64,000 bases of DNA from contig NW_024704771.1 in the NCBI RefSeq assembly GCF_018977255.1, positions 3,782,001 through 3,846,000 of the forward strand. Direction: 5' to 3'. The notes below the pieces were generated by a model. It saw only the letters and a list, made by a program, of their open reading frames with translations, had not been told where the DNA came from and did no database searches. The DNA comes from Callorhinchus milii (lineage: Eukaryota). The position numbers were made by a program, and so were the translations under genes. Positions 26,401-49,854 of this stretch are shown here, piece after piece. How positions within the stretch are numbered: position 1 is the stretch's first letter; each line of letters begins with the position of its first letter.

Positions 26401-28470
26401 GCGATCTCCTCTCATTGATGAGCTATATTAAAAATGCTTTAATGCCAAAAAGATGCATCGTATTCTACAACTACGTAGCAACAGAGGAAAGCATTCCCAG
26501 AGATACATCTATATTCTGCAACACTAATTTTTTCTGGTTGTTATGGAAGCTAGAGTCCTCCCCTGGTGACAGAGAGAGAGAGAGAGAGAAACTGAGCGAG
26601 CGAGAGAGAGACTGAGAAAGCATATTAAAGGAGGCCTCCCACTGAGCCCTCCCAGTTCAGTATAGATAAAGACAAAATGTGTCAATTGACCTTCCATATT
26701 GGATCCTTTGGTTGCAAGCAACGGATTCTGCTAGTTTACATTAAGAGCACAGCAGTAAGGAGGACATTTGAATAGAACAGAATTGCTTTTACACTTCATC
26801 ACCCTTTAAATTCCTGTGATCAGAAGCAGGTCATTCTACCTGAACAATAATAATAATAATCCTTGCATTTGATATAGCGTTTTTCACGTCGGGAGGACGT
26901 CCCAAAGCGCTTCACAGAACACACTGTAAAGTGAATTGACTGTATATTTGTGGGCGAACGCGGCAGCCAATTGCGCACAGCGATATCCCACAGACAGTCG
27001 TAGATTGAAAATGACCAATTTATTATTGTTTTTTGGTTTTGGAGGGATTATTATTAGGCTCTGTGGAGTAAGGAAACTTGCCCTTTAAGACATGCAAATC
27101 ACAATAAGCAGGTCACAACTGCAAGTTGTAAAAATGAATAGTCTTCAGATCACAGAATTTCCACTCACCCCCGAAATCATTGCCTTTTTTCTAGCTCCCT
27201 CCTGTTTATTTTTCATAGCCGTCTGAATACTCGGTCGATCTGCTTTCGTTCCCTTCGCTTCTCTCTGCTCGCTACATATTTTCTTGCCTGCACCAACACC
27301 TTCGGATTCATTTCCCGTTGAATCCCAGTATCGCTTTGCTTTCTGGAAGGGGGGGAAACAGAGACAAAGATTTGTACAAATGTGAAAGAGCAGGAGCACT
27401 GAGGAGTCTCTCTTAGTTGGTAAGTGCTCCCACTGATGACACACTCGGCATCTAAGCTCAGTAAATCAGAGAATCAGTAAAGCTCTTCTTTGTTCACATA
27501 CTAACTGACTCATCTTCACACTTATTGTATCATGAGAGCAGCACTGAATGTCCATACTTTGCCTTTATGACTTGAAAACAGGACGAGATCTTAGGCAAGT
27601 TTCCTTACGCCACACACCTCTATCTATCTGGAAGTGAATAGGAACCCGGTTGTTAGTCAACTGGTGGATGCTTTTCCGGGTATAATAATCACTTCTGAAA
27701 TAAATAGTAATAATTTTGGTCACTTAATACCCCACTGTTTGTGGGACGTTGCTGTGTGGCGGCCACACTTTGCCCACAAACTATACACTCACTCACTATA
27801 CTCTACAAAATATTCTGTGAAACGCTTTGTGAGACGTCTCGAAGATTTAATCAGGCGCTATATTTCTCTCTCTGTTTAACCCCTCTCCTCTCTCTCTCTG
27901 TTTAACCCCTCTCCTCTCTCTCTCTGTTTAACCCCTCTCCTCTCTCTGTTTAACCCCTCTCCTCTCTCTGTTTAACCCCTCTCCTGTCTCTCTGTTTAAC
28001 CCCTCTCCTGTCTCTCTGTTTAACCCCTCTCCTGTCTCTCTGTTTAACCCCTCTCCAGTCTCTGTTTAACCCCTCTCCTCTCTCTGTTTAACCCCTCTCC
28101 TGTCTCTCTGTTTAACCCCTCTCCGGTCTCTCTGTTTAACCCCTCTCTGGTCTCTCTGTTTAACCCCTCTCCTCTCTCTGTTTAACCCCTCTCCTGTCTC
28201 TGTTTAACCCCTCTCTGGTCTCTCTGTTTAACCCCTCTCCTGTCTCTCTGTTTAACCCCTCTCTGGTCTCTCTGTTTAACCCCTCTCCGGTCTCTCTGTT
28301 TAACCCCTCTCTCTGCTCTCTCTCTCTCCCTCATGTGATCTCCTCTCCTCTTCTCCTCCCTCTTGTTATCTTTTCTCCCCTGTGGCTCCCCTTTACCTCA
28401 TGTGACCCCCTCTCTCTCTCTCTCTCGGTACCTGACGTTTCACACGCGTTTCTCCTCTGATCGCCGCCAT
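8437..28470 (-). CDS. WDR46: WD repeat-containing protein 46 (Utp7 homolog), 16 coding exons, ~591 aa
   Basis: Exons (minus strand): 28470-28432, 27342-27169, 25450-25370, 24202-24090, 23343-23256, 21669-21608, 20957-20853, 20116-19966, 18437-18302, 17303-17204, 14903-14750, 12707-12560, 12309-12215, 11207-11112, 10752-10639, 8556-8437. All introns are GT-AG with matching phases; total 1776 nt. Recognisable WDR46 peptides: [128 protein letters not shown]. Confidence 0.96.
10091..10497 (-). mobile_element. Unnamed ~400-bp interspersed repeat (representative copy)
   Basis: Other copies at ~2475-2897, 19529-19838 and 54017-54432 (same orientation) and ~21040-21310, 43760-44155 (opposite). Partial copies at ~9395-9580, 15480-15600, 32540-32655, 33340-33490, 35785-35910, 37910-37975. 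Strand is assigned from the A-rich end. Confidence 0.75.
13143..13466 (-). mobile_element. tRNA-Ala-derived SINE with L2-type tail, young subfamily, full length
   Basis: Head GGAGTCCTGTAGCTCAGTGGTTAGAGCACTCGCTTTGCAAGTGAGAGACCTGAGTTCAATTCC (A/B boxes, TGC anticodon), stem-loop tail, (ATT)n end. Confidence 0.85.
15700..16920 (+). mobile_element. CR1 LINE ORF2 fragment with an internal deletion
   Basis: [64 protein letters not shown]. The expected SCLTNL...[10 protein letters not shown] block is missing at the ggaaatca|actgtttac junction (~16380). CR1 3'-end pieces also occur at ~13480-13690, 24280-24620, 31700-31810, 49010-49210, 58960-59130. Confidence 0.85.
22308..22638 (-). mobile_element. 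tRNA-Ala-derived SINE, young subfamily, full length
   Basis: Near-identical to 13143-13466. Confidence 0.85.
26845..27083 (-). mobile_element. tRNA-Ala-derived SINE, young subfamily, 5'-truncated
   Basis: Near-identical to the 3' two-thirds of 13143-13466. Confidence 0.8.
27864..28312. repeat. Minisatellite, ~19 units of 20-24 bp (ctctctgtttaacccctctcct), WDR46 intron 1
   Basis: Direct reading; 19 copies of gtttaacccc counted. Confidence 0.92.
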
Positions 28471-28547
28471 TTTGTCCACAAAAAAGCCTTTTCCCGGCAG
28501 CCCTCGCGCCCGTGACCCGAGCAGTGAAGCGTGAGCCCCGCCCCCCG

Positions 28548-29189
28548 GTTACCATGGAGACAGGGAGCCCCGCCCCACCAGCTGGTTACCATGGAGACAG
28601 GGAGCCCCGCCCCACCAGCTGGTTACCATGGAGACAGGGAGCCCCGCCCCACCAGCTGGTTACCATGGAGACAGGGAGCCCCTCCCCACCACCCTGATTA
28701 CCATGGAGATAGAGAGACACGCACGGTTACCATGGAGATAGAGAGCCCCCTCCCTGGTTACCATGGAGATAGGGAGCCCCTCCCCTGGTTACCATCGAGA
28801 TAGGGAGCCCCTCCCCTGGTTACCATGGAGATAGGGAGCCGCTCCCCTGGTTACCATGGAGATAGAGAGCCCCGCCTTTGGTTACCATGGAGATAGTGAG
28901 CCCCACCCCTGGTTACCATGGAGATAGGGAGCCCCTCCCCTGGTTACCATGGAGATAGAGAGCCGCTCCCCTGGTTACCATGGAGATAGAGAGCCCCACC
29001 CTTGGTTACCATGGAGATAGAGTGCCCCTCCCTTGGTTACCGTGGAGATAGTGAGCCCCGCCCTTGGTTACCGTGGAGATAGTGAGCCCCGCCCCTGGTT
29101 ACCGTGGAGATAGAGAGCCCCGCCCTTGGTTACCGTGGAGATAGAGAGCCCCGCCCTTGGTTACCGTGGAGATAGAGAGCCCCTCCCCA
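28548..29189. repeat. WDR46-upstream minisatellite, 20 units (4 x 37 bp, then ~31 bp), each carrying an RFX X-box-like core
   Basis: Core GTTACCATGGAGAC (units 1-4), GTTACCATGGAGAT (most middle units), GTTACCGTGGAGAT (last 5). Starts 78 bp upstream of the WDR46 ATG. Confidence 0.9.
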
Positions 29190-30344
29190 TCCGTCTCAAG
29201 ACCCTCCTCTTCGACCAGTCACTGTGTCGGGGGGGATCCCTCTCAGCTCCTGGGAACCCGCAGCCAAAGCCCTCACGGATGGAGTTCCAGAGGGTGGGGG
29301 CAGAATGGCAGACAGTGGGGCGAGCGAGCGAGCGAGGCCGGACAGGGTGGCAGGGGGTGAGGAGGTCGCGGGGTGAGGAGGTCGCGGGGTGGGGGGGGGA
29401 GAAAGACCGCGGAGGGCTTCGAAGGTGAGGACCAGGATCTTGACCCCTGTATCCGGCGGAAAGCGCGACATCCAAATGGTGGAGCGGAGGGCGCGAGGGA
29501 CGGGCGGGAGGCACCGCGGTGCCCGTCGAGTGGCGGCACCGCACCGAGTGGTGGATCGGGGAGGGAGGAGGTCGGAGAGGGGAAGGAGGTGCCGGAGAGC
29601 GAAGGAATTTGAACGCGAGCGTGAAAATCCTGAAGTCGATCCGTTCGCTGACGAGGAGCCAGTGGAGCCCGGGCCCGAACTGGTGATTATTATTATTATT
29701 ATATTCATAATAACAATAATAATAATCCTCGCATTTGATGCAGAGCGGTTCACAGTAGACGTCCCAAAGCGCTCCACGGAATACACTGCAAAGTGAATCG
29801 ACTGCGTATTCGTGGGCGATATATTTTTGGTTTCGTGCTCTGGATTCAATGGGACTGACAACTACAACAAAAGTCCATTGTGGAGAGAGACAGAGCCTTT
29901 TCACGTTACCTGCGAAGTGCTTTGAGACGACTCGACCAAGTGAATAGAGCCGCGGAAACTTGTCTAAGCTTTCACTGAGGCCGGGAGTCGATACCCGGAA
30001 GGATGCTATTCGTAGGACCGGACGTTCATAAGCTCTCCTGCGTCCCTCGTTCCTTTGTTGCTGATGGAAGCTATGATATTGGGCACAAATAAATCAATAT
30101 TATTCTTACGAGAGAGTGAACTTTGGCTCACTTTGCTTACTTGGGGGGCAAACCTGCATTTGGAACCTGAACTCAAATATTTGCCGCTGTGGCAATGGGT
30201 TACGATCAGCTCCGAGTCAACATCGAAATCTGTACACCGGGAACGGTGCGTAGTTCGGGTCCCGCAATAATATAATCCTTTCATTCACCTTATTATGTCG
30301 TTGAGACGTCTCAGAGCGCTTCACCTGTTAGGGCTTTGGCCCGT

Positions 30345-30674
30345 GGAGTCCTGTGGCTCGGTGGTTAGAGCACTCGCTTTGCAATCGAGAGACCTGAGTT
30401 CAATTCCAGGCGGAGGGCCAAACCTCGGGCAAGTTTCCTTACTCCACGCAGAGCCTAATAATAATCCCTCCAAAACCAAAAACAATAATAAATTGGTCAT
30501 TTTCAATCTACGGCTGTTTGTGGGACATTGCTGTGCGCCATCGGCTGCCGCGTTCGCCCACAAATATACAGTCAATTCACTTTACAGTGTGTTCTGTGAA
30601 GCGCTTTGGGACGTCCTCTGGACGTGAAAAGCGCTATATCAAATGCAAGGATTATTATTATTATTATTATTATT
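30345..30674 (+). mobile_element. tRNA-Ala-derived SINE, young subfamily, nested inside the ~400-bp repeat
   Basis: The flanks cctgttagggctttggc and gcaggggt...gattccctgccccaagtgactgg rejoin into the ~400-bp family sequence. Confidence 0.8.
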
Positions 30675-30919
30675 GCAGGGGTAAAAACTGAGTTGATTCC
30701 CTGCCCCAAGTGACTGGTTGCGACATTTAATTGTGACATTAATGAAAGGATTATCATTATAGTCTCTTTCTGTCTCCCGCTCCTGTCTCACCATGTCTCG
30801 TCCATACGCCAGGCATGAGAAGGTTTGGGTGTTGTTTGTTTTTCAGAGGACGTTAAGCAATGAGGTGAGGGTTGTGTTATAGACACACCAACCCGGGGCA
30901 GAGCACGTGATCACTCACT

Positions 30920-30982
30920 AGTTCTGCTAACTCTGCCATTTAATCCCTCACATCAGTTGTCGGCATCTCCTGCCAAACACGG
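30920..30982 (+). other. Possible 5' UTR exon of the SOUL-family gene (5' end undefined)
   Basis: Strong donor acgg|gtaagt at 30982/30983. The ATG exon starts at an acceptor (ttccttgcag|G, 32396/32397), so an upstream exon is required. An in-frame TAA makes this segment non-coding. Confidence 0.35.
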
Positions 30983-31327
30983 GTAAGTCTGTCCTGGGTT
31001 CTCTTCAGGATGAAAATTATTACATACATATATGTATAGAATGATAATACTAATTCTTGCAATTCTTACCACGTCGTGAAGCTATCGCAACTTACTATTT
31101 TTAACCATTGATAATCCTCGGGTTGGACGGAGCATCTATGCCACGGCATCAAGAAATCTCAATGTGCTTCACAGGAATTTACCGTGAAGCGCAGCCATCT
31201 GCCTGAACAGGCACAGACTCATCTTAACGTCTCGTCTGCTCAGACAATTCAGTGTCAGCCTAGACAGCCTGATCCCTTCAACAAATCTGAACTGTTTGAG
31301 GGACGCTGCCGCGCGCAATTGGCTGCT

Positions 31328-31657
31328 ATAATAATAATAATAATAATCCTTGCATTTGATATAGCGCTTTTCACGTCGGGAGGACGTCCCAAAGCGCTTC
31401 ACAGAACACACTGTAAAGTGAATTGACTGTATATTTGTGGGCGAACGCGGCAGCCAATGGCGCACAGCAATGTCCCACAGACAGTCGTAGATTGAAAAAT
31501 GACCAATTTAATTATTGTTTTTGGTTTTTTGGAGGGATTATTATTAGGCTCTGTGTGGAGTAAGGAAACTTGCCCGAGGTTTCGCCCTCTGCCTGGAATT
31601 GAACTCAGGTCTCTCACTTGCAAAGCGAGTGCTCTAACCACTGAGCTACAGGACTCC
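31328..31657 (-). mobile_element. tRNA-Ala-derived SINE, young subfamily, nested in an older SINE copy
   Basis: The flanks gcgcaattggctgc and gctgcgtttcacccacaaaa rejoin into the older SINE body. Confidence 0.8.
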
Positions 31658-32402
31658 GCTGCGTTTCACCCACAAAACACATCTATTATTTGCAAAGATA
31701 TGGGGAAAGAGAGGGATTGGGGCTGACTGGGCAGCTCTTTCAAAGAACTGGCATAGGTACGAAGGGCCGATTGGCCTCCTTTTGTGCTGTAATATTCTGC
31801 GATTCTATTATTTTGTCATTGATTTTTGCTGCATTCTTAACTTCTGCCTCTTACAAAGTACCCCAACCCTAACCCTACTCAAATACTAATACTAACCCTA
31901 ATACTAACTCTAATTCAAATACTAATTTTTGATTCTGTATCCCTCCAACTCCCCTCTCAATCTCTCTCGCTCTCTCTCTCAGTCTCTCTCAACGCGCTGT
32001 ATCAAACACAAGGATTTTATTATTTTTGCAGTGAATCAACGACAACACATCAAATTCTTGCAGCACCTTTCACGTCGAGAGGACGTCCCAAGGTGCTGGA
32101 CAGTCAGGAAATTTTGCCTCGAGCTGAGGGTTGCGATCATGAGGGGTGGAGGGTAGGGAGGGTGGGGGTAGGAGGGTGATCAAAGGTATGGTCTTGAGAC
32201 ACCTTTTGTAGGAGGTAAGGGGTAGGGGGGGTGGTGGGAGAGCGAGGCGAAGGGACTGTGGGTCGAGCGGAAGCAACAGAGGACCACTGAAGGTGCAAAT
32301 CCAGTGCCGCTCAACACACAGAGAGTGAGAGTGATAAGCACAGTTATTTACCAGCCACAATATTTACTTATCACCCTCGAATGCTATTCCTTGCAGGATG
32401 CA

Positions 32403-35400
32403 ATGTCGCCCAGGGTGCTGTTGCTGATCTTTCCACTTCTCGCCACAGGAGTTTGCTCTCGGAGGTAAGAGGCAGTGTGTTGGCCCGGCTCCCCCACAAC
32501 CTCCCTGAATAAAATAGGTCACTCAAGCAAACACCCGACCCGTTAGTTAGTTAGTTAGTTAGGACTTTGGCTGTAGGGTTAACAGGAGCTGTTTAGGAGG
32601 ATTCCCTGACCCCGAGCGATTGATCTGCCCTTCCAGGTCCTGCTAATGAGCCAGCAGGCTCTGTCGCGCTCTCCCGCGCTCTCTTGCCCTCTCTCACGCA
32701 CTCTCACACTCTCTCACGCTCCTGACACGTTCCTGACACGTTCCTGTCACATTCTGTCACAGGAGAAACCCCGAAGCTTGCGTTGAAGCTCCAGAGACTT
32801 TGAGCTTTAAGGTTTTGTGCAAAACTGCCCATTATGAGGTAAGAGAAACGCGTTGAATATTTCTATTTCTGGCACGTAAATTCTTGCTTTCTTGTTTACA
32901 GCACCTACAGTGTGGAGAGAGAATGGGATTTGCCTACACTATGTGGAGTCCTGAGGCGTAATAGTCAGAGCACTCGCCTGACGAGCAAGAGGGCCTGGGT
33001 TTGATTCCCGAGCAGGTCAAAACCGTAGCCAACCACAACAAGATTACATTTGTATAGCGCCTTTCACATCAAGTTCAAGGGTTACTACTGTAATCAGATG
33101 CAAAGGATTTTTATTACTGAACGTGGCAGGATTTGCTGGGCGCTAGTCTCCGAAATGCAATGAGGAAATTAATAAATGTACAGTCTGGTCAATCTTCAAC
33201 CCTTGCTGTCGTGTTTAGAGTTTTTCTGTAGCATACTCTCCACTGGAGGGCAGCCATGGATTTTATTCGGACAAACGTTCCAGTTTCTTTCTCCTCACAG
33301 GCTGTTTTTAAATTTGCTCAGCGCACTTGTGCACAATCGTGTGGATACCCATCTTGCTTAAGAGTCTCCAAACCAAGCTGAGAATTCCATGCCTCCCACC
33401 TACCCCTGGAAATCCCAGAGATAAGATTGTTGGAATGGAATGTGCTCTCTCTCTCTCTCTCTCTCTCTCTCCCTGGAGGGACACATCCTGCTTACGTCTC
33501 AAAAGGCGTAAACTGTATAATAATAATAATTATTAAATCCTTGCATTTGATATAGCGTCTTCGAGACGTCTCGAAGCGCTTCACAGCGCTTCACTGTAAA
33601 GTGAATTGACTGTGTATTTGCGGACGAAATGCGGCAGCCAATTGCGCACAGCTGCGTCCCACAAACAGTCGTGGATTGAGCGACCAATTTATTATTATTA
33701 TTTTTTTTTGAAGGAATTATTACCCCCGGAAACTGATCGACTAACGACCGAGTTCCGACTTTCTGCTAGGTAAACAGAGGCGTGTGGAGTAAGGGAAACT
33801 CGCCCAACGTCTCTCACTGCCACAATCAAATGCAAGGATTATTAATTACTAATATTACTATCGTTAGTATTTGGCGAGTCAGTAGGCAGACACTATTGCT
33901 GACACACTAATGAGCCTGGAATGTGAAGTTAATATAACGCCAGCAATATCGCTGTCTCTCGCTCTCTTTATCTCTTACTCTCTCTCTCTCTCTCTGGTAA
34001 TAGATCCGCAATTACACTGCTTCGGTCTGGGCCAAGACCGGACTGATGTACTATAGGTGGCCGGGCTGGAAGCAAGGGTACCAGCGTCTCGCTCAGTACT
34101 TCGCGGGCAATAATGCAAAGGGTAAGATTGCGTGACATCCCACCTCTTGTTCCCTTCACCCCACTTCCTCCTCTCTCCCCGGAGGTGGGGGGAGCTGAAG
34201 TGTGTCGCACGATCCACACAGACCATGGGGTCAGGATTCCTCGCACTGAAACACACAGACAGTTTTAAGAACATCGACCACCTCTACATAGTCTGATATT
34301 AAGAGTGACACCTCTACATAGTCTGATATTAACAGTGAGCACCTCTATATAGTCTGATATTAACAGTGACACCTCTATATAGTCTGATATTAACAGTGAG
34401 CACCTCTATATAGTCTGATATTAACAGTGACACCTCTATATAGTCTGATATTAACGACACCTCTATATAGTCTGATATTAACAGTGACACCTTTATATAG
34501 TCTGATATTAACAGTGAACACCTCTATATAGTCTGATATTAACAGTGACACCTCTATATAGTCTGATATTAACGACACCTCTATATAGTCTGATATTAAC
34601 AGTGAGCACCTCTATATAGTCTGATATTAACAGTGACACCTCTATATAGTCTGATATTAACAGTGACACCTCTATATAGTCTGATATTAACAGTGAACAC
34701 CTCTATATAGTCTGATATTAACAGTGACACCTCTATATAGTCTGATATTAACAGTGACACCTCTATATAGTCTGATATTAACAGTGAGCACCTCTATATA
34801 GTCTGATATTAACAGTGAGCACCTCTATATAGTCTGATATTAACAGTGACACCTCTATATAGTCTGATATTAACAGTGAGCACCTCTATATAGTCTGATA
34901 TTAACAGTGACACCTCTATATAGTCTGATATTAACAGTGACACCTCTATATAGTCTGATATTAACAGTGAGCACCTCTATATAGTCTGATATTAACAGTG
35001 ACACCTCTATATAGTCTGATATTAACAGTGACACCTCTATATAGTCTGATATTAACAGTGACACCTCTATATAGTCTGATATTAACAGTGAACACCTCTA
35101 TATAGTCTGATATTAACAGTGACACCTCTATATAGTCTGATATTAACAGTGAACAAAAGCTGAAAAGGACACCTCTATATAGTCTGATATTAACAGTGAG
35201 CACCTCTATATAGTCTGATATTAACAGTGACACCTCTATATAGTCTGATATTAACAGTGACACCTCTATATAGTCTGATATTAACAGTGACACCTCTATA
35301 TAGTCTGATATTAACAGTGGACACCTCTATATAGTCTGATATTAACAGTGAGCACCTCTATATAGTCTGATATTAACAGTGACACCTCTATATAGTCTGA

Positions 35401-37872
35401 TATTAACAGTGATACCTCTATATAGTCTGATATTAACATTATCAAATACAAGGATTATAATTATTATTATTCCCTTCTCGGGTCCTCACTCTCTTTCCCA
35501 CCCCCTCCCCCCACCCACCGCCCCCCAACAACCCCACCTCAGGTGCCTAATTAATTGTGTGATGTTGACTCTCCTTTACCCCTTTCAGGCGTTGTCATGA
35601 ACCTGACCTCTCCAGTCCTCACCTCAGTCTCTGAAGACGCTGCCTGGACTCGTGACCTCTACTTCTTGCTTCCTGAGGACTTTCAGGACAGCCCTCCGAC
35701 TCCCAACGACTCACAGGTAAGTTTTACCCCCCCCCCAACCCACCCACCTTACCCCTCAAGGGTCATTTTTTTGTGGAGAAGTCAAGCTGACACACGCGGA
35801 AACCCATCACCGTTGTTTGAGAGTCTCTAAACCGAGCTGAGAATTCCATGCATCCCGCCTACACATGGACATCTCAGAGATAGTTTGTTGGAATGGAATG
35901 ATCTCTCCCTCTCCCTGTAGCTCAGTGGTTAAAGCACGCGCCTCGCAAGCGACAGGACCCGGGTTCGATTCCCAGGTGCGGTGAAACCTGAGACAAGTTT
36001 CCTTACTCCGCACGCCTCTGTTTACTCAGCAGTGAGCAGGAACCCGGTTGTTAGTCAATTGGCAGATCGCCTTCTGTGGATAATCCTTCAAATAAATAAA
36101 TTCAGCCTGCTAAATAAGTCAATAAATCATTCAATAAGTAAATCATTTGATCACTCGATCCATGACTGTTTGTAGGACACTCCAGTGCCCACAGCATAAG
36201 CAGTCGATTCACTTCACAGTGCATCCTGTGAAGCGCTTTGAGACGTCTTGAAGACGTGATAAGGCGCTATATGAAATGCGGGGATTCTTATTATTATGAT
36301 TATTAAATGCTTTGAGATGTATCGAACACATTATTATTGCGATTATTATAAAGGTGTGTTTACGTGACTCCCCTTTGTTTACTCTGCACAGGTGGTTCTA
36401 GTCGATGCCCCTGAGCCGTATCAGTTTGTGAAGCAGTTCCAGGGCAGTCCCAGGAAGGCCCGGGAACAGGCCTCGATCTTGGGCAAGAGCCTGACGCTGA
36501 ACAGGGTTGACTTCGATCCCATGCGCTACTACGTAGCTTCCTATCAGTGGTGAGCAATAGGACCTTCACGTATACATCACTGACCAGTCCATCTAGCCTA
36601 ATGGAGTCCTGTAGCTCAGTGGTTAGAGCACTCGCCTCGCAACAACAACAACAACAACAACAAGATTTCATTTATAGAGCGACTTTCACGTCGGGAGGAC
36701 GTCCCAAGGCGCTGGACAGTTGGGTCAGGACCCGAGCAGTGGGGGGAAATGGTCAGGGTGAGGGGAGGGAAGGGAGGGAGCGAGGAGGGGTGAAATGGTC
36801 AGGGTGAGGGGAGGGAAGGGAGGGAACGAGGAGGGGTGAAATGGTCAGGGTGAGGGGAGGGAAGGGAGGGAGCGAGGAGGGGTGAAATGGTCAGGGTGAG
36901 GGGAGGGAAGGGCGGGAGCGAGGAGGCGGTAGAGAGTCGAGAGGGGAGCTGAAGGCACGGTCGAAGAGAAAGGACTTGAGACCGGCCTTGAAGGAGGAAA
37001 GGGAGGAAGGAAGGTGAAGGCACGGGGGAAGGAGTTCCAGAGCCTCGGGGCTGAGAGGCTGAAGGCCCGGCCACCGATGGTAGGGCGCAAGCGAGAGCCC
37101 TGAGTCCGATTCCCGGGCAGAGCGAAACATTGGGCGAGTTTCCTTAGTCCACACGCCTCTGTTTACTCAGCAATAAGTAGGAACCCGGTTGTTAGTCGAT
37201 TGTCACATCACTTTTCCGGGAGTAATAATCCCTTCAAAAAATAATAATAATTATAAATTGGTCCCTTTAATCTACAACTGTTTGTGGAACACTGCTGTGC
37301 GCAATTGGCTGCCGCATTTCTCCCACAAAACATACAGTCAATTCCCTTTACAGTAAAGCGCTTTGAGACATCGCGAAGATGCGGTAAGGATTATCATTAT
37401 TTTATTATTATTGTTATCATCTTAAACACCTCAGTCAGGTCTCCCTCTCCATCACCTCAACAACAACAACAACAACAACATCTTATGTTTATATAGCACC
37501 CAGAGCGCTTGTCTGTGGAGCCTGATGCCAAGCCTCGGGTGGGGAGGAGAGGGGAACATCTCAGTAAATCTACGCTGTCCTCTCTCGAACTCTTTATATT
37601 ATCTTTCCTGTAATGTTGGGCCCAGAACTCTACACAGTTTTCCAATAATAATAAAAATAATCATAATAATAATCCTTGCATTTGACGTAGCACCTTATCA
37701 CGTCGTCGAGACATCTCAAAGCGCTTCCCAGAATATAATTATACAGTGTATATTTTGTGGCGGAAGCACTGATTGTCGCACAAAGAGGGGATCGAGTGAC
37801 CAAATTATTATTTTTTTTTGGAAGGGATTATTACCCCCGGAAAAACAATCCGCCAATCGACCTTGAACCGGG

Positions 37873-37908
<36 letters not shown>

Positions 37909-39646
37909 GGGACGCACCTTGCTTACCGAATTCCGGAGAGCATTAGGCGCAGGTTGACAAGAGCCGGCAAGGCTTTCTCTGTATCTATCTCCTCTTATAT
38001 TCACCTTAAACCTGTTACGATCACCATCACTAGGAACCCTCAATGCCGGTACAGAGCTGACCTGAGCCACGTGGATCTGGATTTCCTGGAGGAATTCTTC
38101 AGCATAGACGCCCCACGTAAACGCGGTTGGTTCGGAGGTGAAGAGCGAGGCTCCCGGTTGAGAAGCAGAGACAGCGAGAGGCTGGATGACGGGCAGTACC
38201 GGGAGGAAAGAAGCAGGAGACAGTTCGGCCAAGGATGGTGGCAGCAGCACAGACGGGGCTGGGGTAACCACGGCAACCACGATGGCCGCCATGACGGTGA
38301 AGAGCATGGGGACCGAGGCCATGGGCGTCGTTACGACCGAGGCCAAGGGCGGTATGACAACCAAGGCCGTGGGAACGAGGATAACCAAGGCCGTGGGTAC
38401 CAGGATAACCAAGGCCGTGGGAACCAGGATAACCAAGGCCGTGGACACGGGTTCCATTGGAGAGACGAGGACAGAAGAAGAGGCCACAACCCTCACGGAT
38501 GCGGGTAAGCGAGAAAATAATAATAATAATAATAATCCTTGTATTTGATGCATTACCTTACCACGTCTTCCAGACATCTCAGAGCGCTTCACTCTTAAGT
38601 GAAGCGACTGTGTATTTTGTGGGCGATTGCGCACAGCAGCGTCCCACAAACAGTTGTGGATTGAAGTGACCAGTTTATTATTTTTCTTAAGGGATTATTA
38701 CCCCCCGGAAAGCGATCCGCTGTTCGACTAACAACTGGGTTCCTACTTACCTCTGGGTAAACAGGGGTGCGGAGTAAGGAGTAAACTTGCCCAAGGTTTT
38801 ATCCCGCCCGGGAATCGAACCGGGTTCTCTCGCTTGCGAGGCGAGAGCGCGCTCACCACTACGCTACAGGATGCCACTTCGGTAGAGAAAGACACAGCTC
38901 CCAGTCTCCATCACTGACTGCTCTGTGCTGTGTTTGTACCCATCGGAATTTCCAACGCTGAGGTGGATAGAGTTGTTAGGTCAGGGGACCGAGGGATATG
39001 GGGCAAAGCTCGGTAGCTCGAGTTGAGGTACCAGCTAAGCCATGATCTAACAGGCTCGAGGGGCCGTGTGGGCACGTTTCGCCACAAAAATACACAGTCA
39101 CTCCACGTTACAGTATAATTCTGCAGCGCTCTGAGATGTCTCAATGATGTCAAGTGCAGGGCTGATTATTGAAGAGAGCGCGAGAGAGCAACAACAACAA
39201 CTTGCATTTACACAGCGCCCCTCACGCGGGGTAGTGTCACAGAGCGCTTGACGCTGGCGGAGCCGGTGGGGGGTGGAGTGGGGGGGGGGGGGGGGGGGGT
39301 GTGGGGAGGTGAACGTAGGCCAGAAGATGGGGAAGGAGAGAGAAAAAGGCAGAGGGGAGAGTTTGTAGGGCGTAGCGGCTGAAAGCGCGACCGTCAATGG
39401 TGGAGTGAAGGATGTGAGGGACCGGCAGAGGACACGGAGGCAGACACAGAGACACGGACAGAGGCAGGCGCAGGCAGACACGGAGACGCACAGACACCAA
39501 CAGACACAGACGCCGCCAGACAGGTGGTTGGGGAGATGGCCCGTGTAATGTGTGTCTTCTTGTATCGCAGCTCTGTTCAGTGTCAGCGTAATGAGGTGTG
39601 GCACAGTTCGAGGAAAGCCCCAACTTGCTTTCTCCAGCCCGAGTGA
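32403..39646 (+). CDS. SOUL / heme-binding protein family member with signal peptide and a large low-complexity insert (362 aa; 205 aa without exon 38034-38504)
   Basis: Exons 32403-32464, 32763-32838, 34004-34121, 35589-35716, 36392-36549, 38034-38504, 39571-39646; all GT-AG and phase-consistent (2,0,1,0,2,2). Translation: [19 protein letters not shown] (signal-like), then [81 protein letters not shown]. These match SOUL-family motifs (YEIRxY, GFxKLxxYIxGxN, MTAPV, PPxPxD, YxAGY, RxNEVW). Confidence 0.88.
34279..35438. repeat. Minisatellite, ~37-38 units of 26-32 bp (cacctctatatagtctgatattaacagtga), intron after the third coding exon of the SOUL gene
   Basis: Direct reading of near-perfect tandem units, with one interruption at ~35152-35170. 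Confidence 0.95.
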
Positions 39647-39785
39647 CCTGAGCTCAATGCTTCTCTCACACCCGATCTGGGGAAACAACAACAACAACAA
39701 CAACAACAACATATATATATATATGTGTATATATATATATATATATCTGGCGTGGCATCGAGGGCTATCGTCCCGGAGCGTTTGA

Positions 39786-39806
39786 AATAAAGTACTAATA
39801 AATAAA
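39786..39806 (+). terminator. Two AATAAA polyadenylation signals of the SOUL-family gene
   Basis: AATAAA at 39786-39791 and 39801-39806, 140-160 nt after the TGA at 39644-39646. Confidence 0.55.
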
Positions 39807-39829
39807 AGGCTCTGTGTAAATTCTACTAA

Positions 39830-39876
39830 TCTCTCCCTCCTCCCTCTCTCCTGCCTCCCCCCACTCTCTTCCGTCT

Positions 39877-39910
<34 letters not shown>

Positions 39911-40270
39911 CACCCTCTCTCTTCCCCCCTTTTCTCTCATTCTGTCTCCCTCTCTTTCCTTCCCTCTCTCCCTCTTTACTTCCTCTTCCCCTCCCCTCCA
40001 TCTGTCTCCCTCTCTCTGTTTCCCCAACTCTCTCCCTGTCTCCCTCCCCACTGTGCTCTCTCTCCCCCCCCGCCCCAAACTCTCTCCCCCTCTTTTTCTT
40101 CCCTCTCTCCTCCCTCTTCCCTCCCTCGCCCCTCCCCTCCAGCCCTCTCTCCCCCTTCTCTCTCCCACCCCCTTCCCATCTCTCTCTTCCCACTCTTTGT
40201 CTTACTCCCCCTCACTCTCTCCCCCCCACCCCACTGCTCTCTCTCTCTCTCTCCCCCCACACCCCCCACA
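39830..40270. repeat. Long C/T-rich low-complexity tract
   Basis: Almost purely pyrimidine on the + strand; source of the spurious R/E/G ORFs at 39098-40269. Confidence 0.85.
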
Positions 40271-41339
40271 TTCAGCCCTGCCGAGAGGCACTGTTGGTGG
40301 AACTAAATCATCGCTGTCTGTATTCCTTTACTCAATGCTCTTTGAGATGTGCAAAATTCACATAAATTCATAATAAAAATTAATCTTTGCATTCAACGCA
40401 CCCGATTGTTGTGTCTTCGAAACTTCTCAAAGCATTTAATAATAATAATAATACCCGCATTTCATGTAGCGCCTTATCAGGTCATCGAGACGTCTCTAAG
40501 CGCTTCACAGAATATACTGTATAGTGACTGTATATTTGTGGGCAAAACGCGACAGACGATTGCGCACAGCGGCGTCCCACAAAGAGCCGTGGATAGAAGT
40601 GACCGATTTTATTATTGGTTTTTTTGAGGGCTTATTATCAGACGTGTGTGTGTGTGTGTGGAGTAAGGAAACTTACCAAGGTTTCGTGCCCCCCACACCC
40701 CAGCCCCCACCCCTTGCCGGGAATCGAACCCAGACGGAGTGACTGGGGGATGGCATTCCAGAGGTTGGGGGCAGAGTGGCTGAAGGCTCTCCCGCCAATG
40801 GTGGGGCGGGTGGGTCGGGGGACGAGGAGCGGGCCAGAGCCGACTGAGCGGAGGGAACGGGCGGGTTGGTAGGGGGTTAGGAGGCCGCAGAGGTAGGGTG
40901 GGGCGAGGCCACGGAGGGCTTTGTAGGTGAGGACCAGGATTTTGAATCGGATCCTCTGGAAGGAGAGGGACCCAATAGAGTCGGGAAGTGTCGTGACTGT
41001 GTTTCGTTGGTTGGAGACGGCGGCCGTTTCGCACAAACGGCGATGAAGTGGGCGAACAATTTTATTTGGGGGATTATGGGCCAAGACACCGGTGGGGGGA
41101 AGGGGAGAGAGAGAGACTTGGGGGTTTAAACCCACAAAACCCCTGGCTCAGAGGTGAGCGAGAGAGAGAGAGAGAGAGAGAACTGAACCAGGCTATCACA
41201 GCAATAAAAAAAAATGTCAATTTCACATGAAATCAGGACACATTAGATATGTTTTTCCTGTGTTAAATGTATTCCTTTCTCTCTCCGTATTTGTGTGTCT
41301 CATTCTCTCTCGGTCTCTCTCCTCCTCTCTCAGTCTCTC

Positions 41340-43687: not shown

Positions 43688-46600
43688 ATGTTTGGGACTC
43701 GCCGTCTCCTCCTCTGTCTCCTGATTTCAGCGGTCGGTGAGTGAACCTACACGAGAGACGGGGAATCCTCCCACCCACTCAGCTCCTGGTTATCCCGCAG
43801 CCAAAGCCCCAACGGGCCGGGTGGTCCCGGCTGGACAAGCAGCGGGAAAGCTGGCCAGACAGTGATATCAATGGCGAGCTATGGGGTTTTAGCCGGTTAG
43901 CCTCCAGCAGTTACCCCAAACACTCACTCTGGGCTCACCCCCAAGCCTTGGCTCTTGCCAACCTGTGCCTAATAATCTCCGGAATTAGGTGAGCAGAGTG
44001 CATCCCTCCAGGGAGAGAGTGTGGACTCCATACCAACGATCTATCTCTGGGATTTCCGGGGGTAGGTGAGATGTGGGGAATTCTCAGCTTGGTTTGGAGG
44101 CTCTTAAACACGGTGATGGGTTTCCGTGTGAGTTAGACACCCGGCTGACCAAAGAAAATACGTGCCAGCCCCCCGCTCAGGATCAAATCCCCGACTGCTC
44201 AATGCTTTGGGACGTCCTCGTGACGTGAGACGATACAAATCTCCCCCACCTGCATTTTTTTAACATCAATTCTCTGCTTTTTTTCCCCGGCTGCCAATAA
44301 TTACAGGCAAGTTCGAATGCCATTCGCATCCGAGCACATCCCAAATTATTTTAATTCCCCGCGGAACCATTTTATTCGACTGTAACCCTCAGCCCCGATA
44401 TTTGTGATACAACAACCCACATTATCGCAGTGTTTACAGATGAAAGAAAACGCATCGGTTTTCCCGCAGAGTCGGGTAATAATTGACGAACATATTTACT
44501 CGTCACATTTTTTTTTATTTAACTGAACAGTTAATGACTGCGCACCACTACAATTATTTTATTTTCAATCCCAGTTATTAAAATTATATAAATATATATT
44601 TTTTAAGAAAGCTGCAGTACTGTTTCGTGGCCACACAGTGAAACGGTTTTACAGGTTCAAAGGAAATTCATGTGTCAGGTGTAATTGACGACTGTATTCA
44701 ATGTATATTTAATTGCAGTTTATTCTTTTTTCGACGGTTAATGGCTGAACATGAGTAAATTTATTGTGTTTTTACGGTTAAAGTTCATTCCGTGCAACAC
44801 AAAATAATCTGCACCGTTAATCTCAACCCTGAATCACATTACTTTCTGGGGGCAATATTTTTTTTGCGCTTATAATTGACTAATCTATTCATTTTCAACA
44901 CTTGACCTCATAACGGCTTCATAACGTTCAAACATTTAATGGATCAAAAATAATTTCAAACAATTGAGATGCTTCAGTAACTCAGTGCGGCTCTATTACA
45001 AGGTGCAACGATGATTATTATTGTAATGTTAATTATTATATACGTTGTGAGCTGTGGAGTCCTGTAGCTCAGTGGTTAGAGCACTCGCCTGGCAAGCGAG
45101 AGGACCTGGGTTCAATTGGCAGCTACGTTTCTCCCACAAAATACACAGTCACTACACTTTACCGTGTATTCTGTGAAGCCCTTCGAGACGTCTGAAAGAC
45201 TTGAGAAGGCTCTGCGGCAAATGCAAGGATTATTATTATTATTTTTAGTGTTATTGTATTATTGTATCATCGTCATCGTTATTGATGCTGAGATGTTTCT
45301 GACGAGCAGTTGGCTTCGAGGTGTCGGGGCCCAAGGAGGCGCTGGAGGTGACCGTGGGGGAGGACGGCGTGTTGCGCTGCCAGGTGGAGCAGGCTTTGCC
45401 TCTGATGAACCTGGAGGTCAGGTGGGTCAGGCAGGATTGGAACTCGCCCGTCTATCTGTACAGAGACAGAAAGGAGCAGCTCAGCGTCCAGGACAAGGCG
45501 TATCAAGGGAGGACCGAGATGGATAGCCAGCAGATTTCTGCGGGCAATTTTTCGCTGATGATCAAGAACGTTCAACCCCCAGACAACGGCTCCTACACCT
45601 GTTTTGTTAAATTGTCCGAGAAATCCAACGAGGCTCTGGCAGAGCTGAAGGTTCGAGGTGAGACCGTGATGTCACCCTGACACAGCGTTCAAACCGGCCT
45701 CTCACTTTGCTTACAGAGAGAGGTTGGGTTCATGTGTGTGTGTGAATGTGTGTGTGTGTGTGCGTCTGTGAGTGACAGTGTGTATATGTGTGTGTGTGTG
45801 TGTGAGAGACTGTATGTGAATGCACGTGCGTGTGTGTGTGATAGTGTGTGTGTGGGGGGTGGTGGGGGGGGAGACAGNNNNNNNNNNNNNNNNNNNNNNN
45901 NNNNNNNNNNNNNNNNNNNNNNNNNNNNNNNNNNNNNNNNNNNNNNNNNNNNNNNNNNNNNNNNNNNNNNNNNNNNNNNNNNNNNNNNNNNNNNNNNNNN
46001 NNNNNNNNNNNNNNNNNNNNNNNNNNNNNNNNNNNNNNNNNNNNNNNNNNNNNNNNNNNNNNNNNNNNNNGTGTGACAGCGTGCGTACGTGTGTGTNNNN
46101 NNNNNNNNNNNNNNNNNNNNNNNNNNNNNNNNNNNNNNNNNNNNNNNNNNNNNNNNNNNNNNNNNNNNNNNNNNNNNNNNNNNNNNNNNNNNNNNNNNNN
46201 NNNNNNNNNNNNNNNNNNNNNNNNNNNNNNNNNNNNNNNNNNNNNNNNNNNNNNNNNNNNNNNNNNNNNNNNNNNNNNNNNNNNNNNNNNNNNNNNNNNN
46301 NNNNNNNNNNNNNNNNNNNNNNNNNNNNNNNNNNNNNNNNNNNNNNNNNNNNNNNNNNNNNNNNNNNNNNNNNNNNNNNNNNNNNNNNNNNNNNNNNNNN
46401 NNNNNNNNNNNNNNNNNNNNNNNNNNNNNNNNNNNNNNNNNNNNNNNNNNNNNNNNNNNNNNNNNNNNNGTGTGACAGCGTGCGTACGTGTGTGTGTGTG
46501 ACAGTGTGTGAGTGAGAGACAGTGTGTGTGTGTGTGTCTGTGAGTGACAGTGTGTATATATGTGTGTGTGTGAGAGACTGTATGTGAATACACGTGCGTG

Positions 46601-46909
46601 TGTGTGTGTGATAGTGTGTGTGTGTGGGGGGTGGTGGGGGGGGAGACAGCATGTGTGTGACAGCGTGCGTACGTGTGTGTNNNNNNNNNNNNNNNNNNNN
46701 NNNNNNNNNNNNNNNNNNNNNNNNNNNNNNNNNNNNNNNNNNNNNNNNNNNNNNNNNNNNNNNNNNNNNNNNNNNNNNNNNNNNNNNNNNNNNNNNNNNN
46801 NNNNNNNNNNNNNNNNNNNNNNNNNNNNNNNNNNNNNNNNNNNNNNNNTGTGTGACAGCGTGCGTACGTGTGTGTGTGTGTGTGACGGTGTGTGAGTGAG
46901 AGACAGTGT

Positions 46910-46946
<37 letters not shown>

Positions 46947-49854
46947 ACAGTGTGTAAGTGGACAACCCCAGGCTTCTCTTTTCCACCGCAAACCGTTTCC
47001 TCCGTCCACCTGCCCATGCCTCTCGCCCATCCTCTCCTCGAACTCCAACTGTGAGGAGATGCTGGACTTCTTCGAATCTAAAATCAAGGGGATACATTCA
47101 GTCACCTCAGCCCCGTCCACAGCCATCACCTCTCCCTCCTGACCCACCAACCCACCACCCTCCCATACTCCTTCGAGCTTATCTCTCCCTCCTCCCTCAA
47201 GATAACTGTCCGCAAACTCAAACCCACCACCTACTCCCTCGATCCCATCCCCAGCTCTCCCCTCATCTCCCAACTCCACCTTCTGGCCCCTCTCCTGTCC
47301 AATGTCATCAACCTCTCCTTATCCCCCTAAATACAGCCGTCATCAACCCCATCTTGAAAAAGCCTTCCCTGGACCCATCCCTCCTCTCCAGCTACTGCCC
47401 CATCTCTAACCTCCCATTCCTCTCCAAGGTCCTGGAATGAGTCGTCGCGTCCCAGCTCTGTTCCTTTCTCTCTCGCCATTCCCTCTTTGAACCTCTCCAA
47501 TCCGGCTTCCGCGCTGCCCACAACACGGAAACAGCCCCGGTCACAGTCACTAACAGAATTCTGAACATCTGTGACCACACGGCTCCCTCTGCCTCCTTGT
47601 CCTCCTCGACCTCTCTGCCGCCTTCGACACTGTCGACCACTCCATCCTCATGCACGCCTCTCCCCTCTACTTAATCTTCACGGACCTACCTTTGCCTGGT
47701 TCGATTCCTATCGCTCTCACCGTCTCCACTTTGTTGCCTGTAACAGTTTCTCCTCCAGCCCCCGCACTGTCACGTCTGGTGTCCCCCAGGGCTCTGTCCT
47801 TGGCCCCCTCCTCTTTAATATCTACATGTTCCCCCCTTGGTGACATCATCCGCAGACATGGGGTCAACTTCCATATGTATGCGGATGACACCCAACTCTA
47901 TCGTTCTGCCTCCAACCTCAACTCCAGGACCACTGCTGTCCTGACAAACTGCGGTCGGACATCAAGTCATGGATGAGGGCAAATTTCCTACAGTTGAACA
48001 AGACTGAGGCCCTCCTGATCGGCTCACGCCAGCGCCTCAGCACCTCAGGCTCTGGCAGCGTCACCCTCCATGGTTGCTCACGACAACTCACCAGCCATCA
48101 GGAACCTGGATGTCTTGTTCAATCCTCAACTGTCTTTTCTTCCCCACATCCAAGCCATGACCCGCTCTGCCTTCCCTCACCTCTGTAACATCGCCCGACT
48201 CTGCCTCACTACCTCAGCCTCCTTCAAGTCCCGCCTCAAGACCCTCCTCTTTGGCCATACCATCGGTCACCCCCCCTTCCCCTCCCCTCCCTTCCCCCTC
48301 CCTGACCCCAGCTCAGGTCTGAAATGCTGAACACTATCCAGCGCCTTGGGATGTCCTCCCGACATGAAAGACACTATACAAATGTAATCATGTTGTTGTT
48401 GTGTGTCTGGGGGGACAACAGTGTGTGTGTGTGAGAGATAGTGTGAGTGTTGGGGAGTGTGTTGGGTTGTCGGGAAGTAGTGTGCGCGGGGGGGTGGGTG
48501 CTGTATGTGTTGGGGGGACAGTGTACAGTAACCACCTGTAACACCAGCTCTAGGTGAGGCCCCGCTGTTACACACAGAGGGTTACCAGAACGGGGGGATC
48601 AGGCTAAGCTGTCACTCCGAGGGCTGGTTCCCGGAGCCCCAGATCCTGTGGGGGGACGGCAGCCGCAGGAACATGACCGCACAGTCGCAAACCAGCCACG
48701 TGAAAGATTCCAAGGGTTTCTTCACCACGAAGAGCAGCGTGACTGTGAGCAGTGACTCCACAGACACTCTCACCTGCCAGATACGGAACCGCTTGCTCAA
48801 CAAGGACCAAGAGGCTATGATTATGATCTCAGGTCAGTGTTTCCCTCGCATTAACCAGACTTCACGAGCAACGAGTGGCGTCCAGTAGGTTAGTGGTCAG
48901 AGCACCACAAACAAAACGTGGTCACTCAATCCACGACTGTTCGTGAAACGCTGCTGTGCGCAATGGACTGCCGTGTTTCACCCACAAAACGCACAGTGAT
49001 GGGATCTTACAGTACAGAAGGAGGCCATTCGGCCCATCTTGCCTGTGCTGGCTCTTTGAAAGAGCTGCTAACCTGTCCCACTCCCCCCCTCTTAACCCAC
49101 AGCCCTGCAACTCGTTCCTTTTCAAGTACCTATCCAATTCCCTCGTATCGAATCTGCTTCCACCAGCCTGTCAGGGCGTTAGTTCCACACCGTAACAACT
49201 CTGGGGTGAAAAATGTATATTTTTTGCACATTCACTACACTTTATAGCGTATTCTGTGAAGCGCTTTGAGACGTCTGAACGACGTGATGAGGAGCTATTT
49301 CAAACGTATTTTTATTGATAATGTATCACAAAGGAGGGAATGAAATGAATTGTGCGGCTTAATCCCTGTGGGTTGGGGACGTCCTCCTGACGTGAAAGCA
49401 AAGGCGCAACAGCAATATCAGTTGTTGTCGTCGTAGTGGTGGTGGTGACTCTCTTGGTTTCTCTGGCAGAGGAAATGTTTCCCCGGGTCTCTGCCTGGAT
49501 GGTGCTGTTTATTCTGCTTCTCGTCGTCCTCCCCATGGCTGTCGCTGGAACCGTCTTCATTTGGAGAAAACAGACCACGAAGATTAAAAGTACGTTTGCT
49601 TTTCCTGACTCACTCGGAGCCCCGTAGCTCAGCGGTCAGAACGTTGGCCTCGCGAGCGAGCGAGCGAGGGGACCCGGGTTCGAATTCCCGGGTCGGGGCG
49701 AAACCTTAGGCAAGTTTCCTTACTGTACACACGCACAGGCACACGCACACACGTGCTTCTGCTTACCCAGGAGTAAGTAGGAATCCGGGCGTTAGTGGAT
49801 TGCTGGATCACTTTCTGAGGTAAGTGGTTTCTGTGTCAGCCTGGCACAGTGGTA

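Follow-up and report, generated by a model that had tools for sequence, protein, structure and literature searches.

The subject of this analysis is a gene of the SOUL family in the elephant shark, Callorhinchus milii, and in particular a 471-nucleotide (nt) exon that lies directly before the exon of its terminal strand. The gene is found in a stretch of 64,000 nucleotides (National Center for Biotechnology Information (NCBI) RefSeq assembly GCF_018977255.1, contig NW_024704771.1, positions 3,782,001 to 3,846,000 of the forward strand), and we call this whole stretch the window. We read positions 27000-41000 of the window and rebuilt the gene on the + strand as seven exons with GT-AG borders throughout. 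We find that the 471-nt exon, called here the insert exon, is a real coding exon, that it encodes what is predicted to be a long disordered surface loop within a SOUL fold, and that cartilaginous-fish orthologues carry inserts at the same place. The features of the gene are the following.

32403-32464, + strand: exon 1, with the start codon and a signal-peptide-like N-terminus, ending in phase 2 (rebuilt gene model)
32760-32765, + strand: tandem acceptor CAGGAG of exon 2, which accounts for isoforms X1 and X2 (RRR versus RR)
32763-32838, + strand: exon 2, mature N-terminus with two conserved cysteines (EAC...KVLC; gene model)
34004-34121, + strand: exon 3, beginning of the SOUL core, carrying an N-x-T glycosylation sequon (gene model and Pfam match)
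35589-35717, + strand: exon 4, SOUL core (...NLTSPVL...; gene model and Pfam match)
36393-36549, + strand: exon 5, SOUL core up to the strand RYYVASYQ, ending with the TG of a split codon in phase 2
38034-38504, + strand: insert exon, 471 nt, phase 2 on both sides, residues 181-338 (W-NPQC...NPHGC-G; from the frame, the splice sites and the annotated products)
38359-38444, + strand: tandem repeat in the insert exon, 24-nt unit, 3.6 copies, 95% matches, encoding DNQGRGN(Q/E) octapeptides
38506-38508, + strand: in-frame TAA inside the donor GGTAAG of the insert exon
39571-39646, + strand: last exon, with the residual loop SVQCQ, the beta-strand RNEVWHSS, a conserved C-terminal cysteine (PTC) and the stop codon
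39786-39806, + strand: candidate polyadenylation signals, three overlapping AATAAA about 140 nt past the stop codon, as read from the sequence

When the seven exons are joined they encode 362 amino acids, and when the insert exon is left out they encode 205 amino acids in the same frame. The codons at both introns flanking the insert exon are split after the second base (exon 5 ends ...TAT CAG TG/ and the last exon begins /C TCT, the slash standing for the border), the acceptor of the insert exon reads ...catcactag/G and its donor GCGG/gtaagc. Its frame, read from 38035, runs for 157 codons without a stop, with NPQC at the start and NPHGCG at the end. A preliminary description of this DNA had claimed a 471-nt exon with phase-2 introns on both sides, whose inclusion or omission gives 362 or 205 amino acids without a frameshift, and our reading of the sequence confirms this. 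The junctions it gave need two small corrections: the codon at the 5' junction encodes W if the exon is included (TG/G) and C if it is skipped (TG/C), and the codon at the 3' junction of the insert exon reads G. Intron 3 of the gene contains a minisatellite (34279-35438, 30-nt unit, about 39 copies), and two more lie upstream of the gene at 27865-28323 and 28547-29188, as arrays of 24-nt and 31-37-nt units.

The 362-amino-acid product is the NCBI model XP_007909829.1, entered as 'uncharacterized protein LOC103190751 [Callorhinchus milii]', and is identical to XP_042200821.1, isoform X1; positions 31403-40646 of the window are identical to scaffold MU249860.1 of GCA_018977255.1. Isoform X2, with 361 amino acids, results from the tandem acceptor of exon 2, and the one-Arg difference between X1 and X2 sits right after the predicted cleavage site of the signal peptide. 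If the donor at 38504 is not used, the protein ends NPHGCG after 338 amino acids, and this is the UniProt entry A0A4W3HB03. A further entry, V9L1W3 ('Heme-binding protein 2-like protein', 362 amino acids), has the same junctions and three differences, A30P, R211H and R293H. The V9K and V9L entries of Callorhinchus milii stem from the transcript set of the 2014 genome paper, and the private substitutions of V9L1W3 fit an independent source. All four recorded products of LOC103190751 (362, 362, 361 and 338 amino acids) thus contain the insert exon. Exact gene-level look-ups of three sequences (P0001, P0028 and P0154) gave no match.

The preliminary description had placed the protein in the SOUL family, given it a signal peptide, and located a disordered insert between the strands YYVASYQ and RNEVW. 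The family and the place of the insert are borne out, the N-terminus is signal-peptide-like, and the insert is predicted to be disordered. The 362-amino-acid form matches the Pfam SOUL profile PF04832 with 96.6 bits (cut-off 27) over profile positions 2-158 of 173, and the skipped 205-amino-acid form with 104.7 bits over positions 2-171; the insert alone has no Pfam match. An AlphaFold2 model of the 362-amino-acid form, built on a 55-sequence alignment, has a predicted local distance difference test score (pLDDT) above 90 over most of residues 31-180, including the strand RYYVASYQ (residues 173-179), and of 85-88 over the terminal strand RNEVWHSS (residues 344-351). The score falls below 50 within the insert over residues 186-190, 206-235 and 244-335, and a short helix, LDFLEEFF, is predicted inside the insert at residues 196-203. 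The Foldseek match of the model to human SOUL (4ayz, 3r8j) has a template modelling (TM) score, taken relative to the target, of 0.77 at E 3e-13; for mouse HEBP1 the score is 0.73. The model thus predicts the alpha+beta fold of SOUL with a C-terminal strand that completes the sheet; the final strand RNEVW still joins the modelled fold, which closes around the insert, and the insert itself is predicted to lie at the surface as a loop of some 150 disordered residues.

The protein has a hydrophobic N-terminus of a kind typical of secreted proteins. The strongest 10-residue hydrophobic window of the 362-amino-acid protein starts at residue 5, with a mean Kyte-Doolittle value of 3.07, and is followed by GVCS/RR; such a signal-peptide-like hydrophobic N-terminus is common to all of the relatives. 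The protein has three N-x-S/T sequons, and its mature form contains six cysteines when the insert exon is included and five when it is skipped.

To place the gene among its relatives we used a full HMMER scan that covered 1.84 billion representatives and found 480 relatives, none of them above 38% identity. Word-indexed homologue searches with the 362-amino-acid form, the 205-amino-acid form and a 9-sequence alignment retrieved nothing beyond the queries, probably because low-complexity words swamped them. The best single-domain matches are chondrichthyan proteins in which the SOUL core is followed by a long low-complexity insert and then by xE(I/V)WF...C. These insert-bearing orthologues come from five elasmobranchs.

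Heptranchias perlo: XP_067829767.1, 266 amino acids
Pristiophorus japonicus: UPI00398F50CC ('streptococcal hemagglutinin-like'), 659 or 661 amino acids
Chiloscyllium punctatum: XP_072405766.1, 282 amino acids
Narcine bancroftii: XP_069775718.1, 301 or 312 amino acids
Leucoraja erinacea: XP_055486571.1 (isoform X7), 402 amino acids

Their inserts range from about 50 to about 460 residues and lie at the same place, so that all six cartilaginous fishes sampled have an insert in their automatic gene models. The models are named 'uncharacterized' or are misnamed after their Ser-rich repeats. The next relatives are ordinary secreted SOUL proteins of 208-227 amino acids, from the elephant shark itself (XP_007909114.2), lamprey, coelacanth ('soul5, like') and teleosts ('soul5'). 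An alignment of nine proteins, the six with an insert and three ordinary secreted SOULs, shows the E, the W and the C-terminal Cys to be invariant. A maximum-likelihood tree made without the inserts unites the six proteins that bear one in a single clade, with a Shimodaira-Hasegawa-like approximate likelihood ratio test (SH-aLRT) support of 85. Within it the elasmobranchs group together (98) with the elephant shark as their sister, and the clade stands beside the soul5 group within a well-supported set of SH-aLRT 96. LOC103190751 is a cartilaginous-fish-specific sister paralogue of the secreted vertebrate SOULs ('soul5 / HEBP2-like'). Two other kinds of relative appeared in the scan. The strongest non-self matches (P0002, P0003 and P0004) are very long proteins (1529 and 867 amino acids in amphioxus, and one of 3105 amino acids) with 4-8 matched stretches each, consistent with several tandem SOUL domains, and a cluster of salmon and whitefish relatives (P0007 and its cluster) has a Pro/Thr-rich low-complexity tail after the fold.

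We mapped the gene structure around the insert in three of the elasmobranchs. The insert is a single exon of 144 nt in Heptranchias and of 258 nt in Chiloscyllium, in each case with phase 2 on both sides and at the same codon as in the elephant shark. In Narcine it is made of eight mini-exons (42, 33, 33, 72, 42, 33, 75 and 42 nt), all multiples of three and all in phase 2, which lie at L005 17782-33071 as duplicated sets with near-identical intron flanks. A 33-nt mini-exon of Narcine (about 20571-20603) is annotated as alternatively included, giving isoforms X1 of 312 and X2 of 301 amino acids, and at least seven isoforms are annotated in Leucoraja. In the three mapped genes the last exon opens directly with the strand, and only the elephant shark keeps the residual loop SVQCQ; in the elasmobranchs a Cys stands right before the insert.

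In the ordinary paralogues of elephant shark and lamprey, the homologous codon (...YN R/P...) is split by a phase-2 intron that contains no exon and lies two residues past the conserved Tyr of the second-to-last strand. Because this intron sits at exactly that codon, the insert exon or exons arose within an ancestral intron, and the insert later evolved by tandem repeats and exon duplication. The annotated products together with the orthologous exons at the same codon and phase are decisive support that the insert exon is a real coding exon. Both of its flanks in the elephant shark (37600-37860 and 38516-38870) are copies of an abundant interspersed repeat found at more than 50 other places in the window, which resembles a short interspersed nuclear element (SINE) and has (AAT)n and tRNA-like pieces. 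The insert exon itself has no other copy within the window, and a transposon origin was rejected for the repeat families of this window on that ground.

The inserts are hypervariable in sequence, rich in repeats and widely different in composition. That of the elephant shark is rich in R, G, D, Q, N and H, with a net charge of +3 and with 18% Arg, 7% His, 17% Gly and runs of RG and HG. The insert of Chiloscyllium is likewise basic or neutral, while those of the skate (Leucoraja), the electric ray (Narcine) and the sawshark (Pristiophorus) contain 21-23% Ser and are net acidic (-10 to -18). Similarity beyond composition was found only among these last three inserts, for which 0 of 400 shuffles reach the observed score. 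A homology seen by eye between the acidic-hydrophobic-then-basic stretch of the elephant-shark insert and EELDFMSGIDTRRRR of the elasmobranch inserts is not claimed here, as the alignment scores lie within those of shuffles. We also rejected kinship with a serpin of the bullfrog (P0119, Aquarana catesbeiana serpin A3K-like), which the insert matches with E 2e-7, and take the match as convergent low complexity; the N-terminus of that protein has a run of NQGQGNQQ octapeptides that resembles the DNQGRGNQ repeats of the elephant-shark insert.

The inserts of the same three elasmobranchs are also marked by multibasic sites. The furin-type motif R-x-(K/R)-R closes each repeat unit in Pristiophorus, Narcine and Leucoraja, where it is observed 7, 3 and 13 times against 0.6, 0.2 and 1.4 expected (P<=0.0004 for the excess over shuffles). 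No significant excess was found in the inserts of Heptranchias or Chiloscyllium.

We consider the insert exon to be, very probably, a constitutive exon that encodes a disordered loop throughout the clade. The explanation that we regard as best overall, and as reasonably probable, adds to this that the loop serves as a cleavable connecting peptide in a secreted SOUL protein. The 362-amino-acid protein would enter the secretory pathway and fold as a small-ligand-binding SOUL domain with three disulfides, with the exposed loop as a protease-accessible connecting peptide. Convertases of the furin type would probably nick or excise the loop at multibasic sites, the candidates being RSRR, RKR and RRR in the elephant shark and REKR, RKKR and RRRRRR in elasmobranchs, and the sheet, the C-terminal cysteine and disulfides would keep the final strand attached. 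Cleavage of the loop seems rather likely in skate, electric ray and sawshark; in the elephant shark it may occur, but is somewhat doubtful.

Several results weigh against this explanation. The elephant-shark insert has no excess of furin-type motifs (1 observed versus 0.9 expected, which is what its Arg content predicts), and its PRKR reads PRKH in V9L1W3, so that the site is not strictly conserved. The P-values of the enrichment in the three elasmobranchs are inflated by near-identical repeat units, and the basic residue before E(V/I)W is partly ancestral (canonical RHNEVW). Finally, the local alignment scores of the elephant-shark insert with the elasmobranch inserts are not above those of shuffles. 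With no similarity beyond composition, a single origin of the insert before the split of chimaeras from sharks and rays rests on the position, the phase and the tree, all of which it fits, and the insert sequences cannot confirm it.

The loop could instead stay uncleaved and work as a disordered appendage, charge-rich and expanding by repeats, that binds something extracellular. Candidate ligands suggested by the composition would be metals or heme for the His/Gly-rich stretch of the elephant shark, and calcium, mineral or matrix for the acidic Ser/Asp/Glu repeats of skate, electric ray and sawshark. The His and Gly content and the RG and HG runs of the one insert, and the Ser content and negative charge of the other three, agree with such a role, and the Pro/Thr-rich tail of the salmon and whitefish relatives indicates that the family tolerates, and may use, disordered additions. 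A SOUL protein is also reported from a mussel-shell proteome study (PMC6641155). However, the change from basic or neutral inserts to strongly acidic ones in the rays argues against one shared binding function, and furin-type sites at the end of each repeat unit in three species are hard to square with a loop that remains intact in the secretory pathway. We hold this appendage, the main rival explanation, to be rather unlikely.

A bolder form of the cleavage explanation takes the exons in the SOUL intron as a precursor region, from which convertases would cut out the loop and free lineage-specific peptides, leaving a two-chain SOUL held together by disulfides. In the elephant shark the freed peptides would be rich in Gly, His and Trp; those of the rays would be acidic and possibly phosphorylated. 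We think this improbable; if true, it would be a peptide-precursor function nested in a folded ligand-binding domain.

The preliminary description had proposed a regulated cassette, in which tissue-specific skipping would switch between a compact 205-amino-acid SOUL and the 362-amino-acid looped form. The exon is indeed symmetric, a multiple of three and in phase 2 on both sides, its acceptor is a TAG behind a weak pyrimidine tract, and the alternative mini-exon of Narcine and the annotated isoforms of Leucoraja also speak for variable splicing. The claim that skipping keeps the frame holds as well: a family-typical length is restored, and the 205-amino-acid product can be aligned to the canonical family, its loop being only two residues shorter and its Pfam score the better one (104.7 versus 96.6 bits). 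But the splicing switch itself is unsupported. The four recorded products all include the exon, and the exact skipped products of 205 and 204 amino acids are absent from a collection of 15 billion sequences, a negative that carries little weight. A mature protein made without the exon would have five cysteines, an odd number, instead of six. Skipping looks 'normal' only in the elephant shark because the last exon there keeps the residual loop SVQCQ; in the three mapped elasmobranch genes full skipping would delete the loop. A regulated cassette is accordingly quite improbable.

That the insert exon is a chance open frame in an intron, taken up by gene predictors, is a view we hold to be extremely improbable and already largely refuted, by V9L1W3 with the same junctions and its own polymorphisms and by the orthologous exons mapped in Heptranchias, Chiloscyllium and Narcine. 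The open frame alone is weak evidence against it, since T makes up just 12.5% of the exon, an antisense frame likewise runs open through it and on into the flanking repeats, and some frame of the six is open in 21% of dinucleotide-preserving shuffles of the exon; 6% of 471-nt windows within the 64-kb window have an open frame. The frame demanded by the neighbouring exons, however, is open in only 0.5% of such shuffles.

Among known proteins, the closest comparison is with HEBP2/SOUL and HEBP1/p22HBP (PF04832; PDB 4ayz, 3r8j, 7oon, 2gov), which have the same domain, fold and NE(V/I)W strand; the elephant-shark protein is about 29-30% identical to human SOUL and 24% identical to mouse HEBP1. HEBP1 and HEBP2 themselves are cytosolic proteins that lack a signal peptide, and at the site of the insert they have only a short loop, of about 10 residues; heme binding is disputed even for human SOUL. 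The elephant-shark protein differs from both in its hydrophobic N-terminus, extra cysteines, N-glycosylation sequons and 157-residue insert. The secreted paralogues (C. milii XP_007909114.2, lamprey XP_032815012.1, coelacanth H2ZYS1 and turbot A0A8D2ZP93), which are the sister group of the insert-bearing clade, share with LOC103190751 the hydrophobic N-terminus, the N- and C-terminal cysteines and the codon of the phase-2 intron. They differ in their size of about 208-227 amino acids, in a plain loop Y(N/D)(S/R)P....NRHNEVW and in the lack of an exon within the intron.

By analogy, the loop may also be compared with the connecting peptides of the proinsulin type and with multi-copy convertase precursors, to which it is alike as a disordered, fast-evolving segment with basic bounds in a disulfide-bonded secreted protein. 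As in multi-copy peptide precursors, the repeat units of three elasmobranchs each end in R-x-K/R-R. Unlike proinsulin, the host is a SOUL fold, there is no recognisable conserved peptide product and the sites of the elephant shark are not enriched; the likeness would be one of working and not of family.

Neither a view that secreted SOULs are lacking nor the claim of a new system could be upheld. Vertebrates have a group of SOUL paralogues with signal-peptide-like N-termini (soul5/'HEBP2-like'), which has a second member in Callorhinchus milii. In tomato, the apoplastic SlHBP2 is a SOUL protein that has a signal peptide and acts outside the cell, and differs in having no insert (PMC10663603). 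The SOUL proteins of siphonophore (Physalia) venom carry signal peptides and act outside the cell, and what is added to them is an N-terminal amphipathic region and not a loop insert (bioRxiv 10.64898/2026.08.01.742136). Both the tomato and the Physalia proteins fall outside the vertebrate clade analysed here. The preliminary description itself had named annotation of the insert across orthologues as an argument against novelty, and such annotation partly exists, in the automatic models of the six cartilaginous fishes. A search of the literature that covered the locus, its accessions and heme-binding protein 2 of sharks or elasmobranchs gave no paper on the gene or the insert. The insert-bearing SOUL is thus an undescribed variant of a known family, known so far as automatic gene models, and is not a new system.

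The remaining features of the window were noted in passing. Downstream of the SOUL gene there are an immunoglobulin V-set exon (45321-45680, + strand) and a PRY/SPRY (B30.2) exon (58204-58788, + strand), which together look like a butyrophilin- or TRIM-like gene. These are the immune neighbours claimed for the SOUL gene, and no functional link to it was found. The gene downstream of the Heptranchias orthologue has immunoglobulin-like exons with no detectable similarity to the V-set or B30.2 exons of the window. A beta-1,3-galactosyltransferase-like region (Pfam Galactosyl_T) is found at 767-1896 on the + strand in two overlapping frames that match profile positions 2-75 and 76-193, and the frame seems to shift by one base near 1328-1335. 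A pseudogene or a sequencing error could account for this, and this nearby galactosyltransferase gene gives no functional link to the SOUL gene either. The region of about 45700-47300 contains runs of N totalling 734 bases among TG/CA-rich simple sequence.

The finding does not open a long-standing question, and correct assignment to the family of public models that are unnamed or misnamed is a small practical gain. It does offer, as far as the structure model predicts, a clean natural example of a disordered segment of about 50 to 460 residues that separates the last two strands of a compact fold and leaves the fold intact. This insert was built by new symmetric exons in an ancestral intron and was diversified across the cartilaginous fishes by repeat expansion and exon duplication. 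To our knowledge, the cartilaginous-fish lineage lacks several of the secretory protein families of bony vertebrates. If the loop is processed, or if it binds mineral or metal, the insert-bearing SOULs would be an unstudied class of secreted proteins in cartilaginous fishes.

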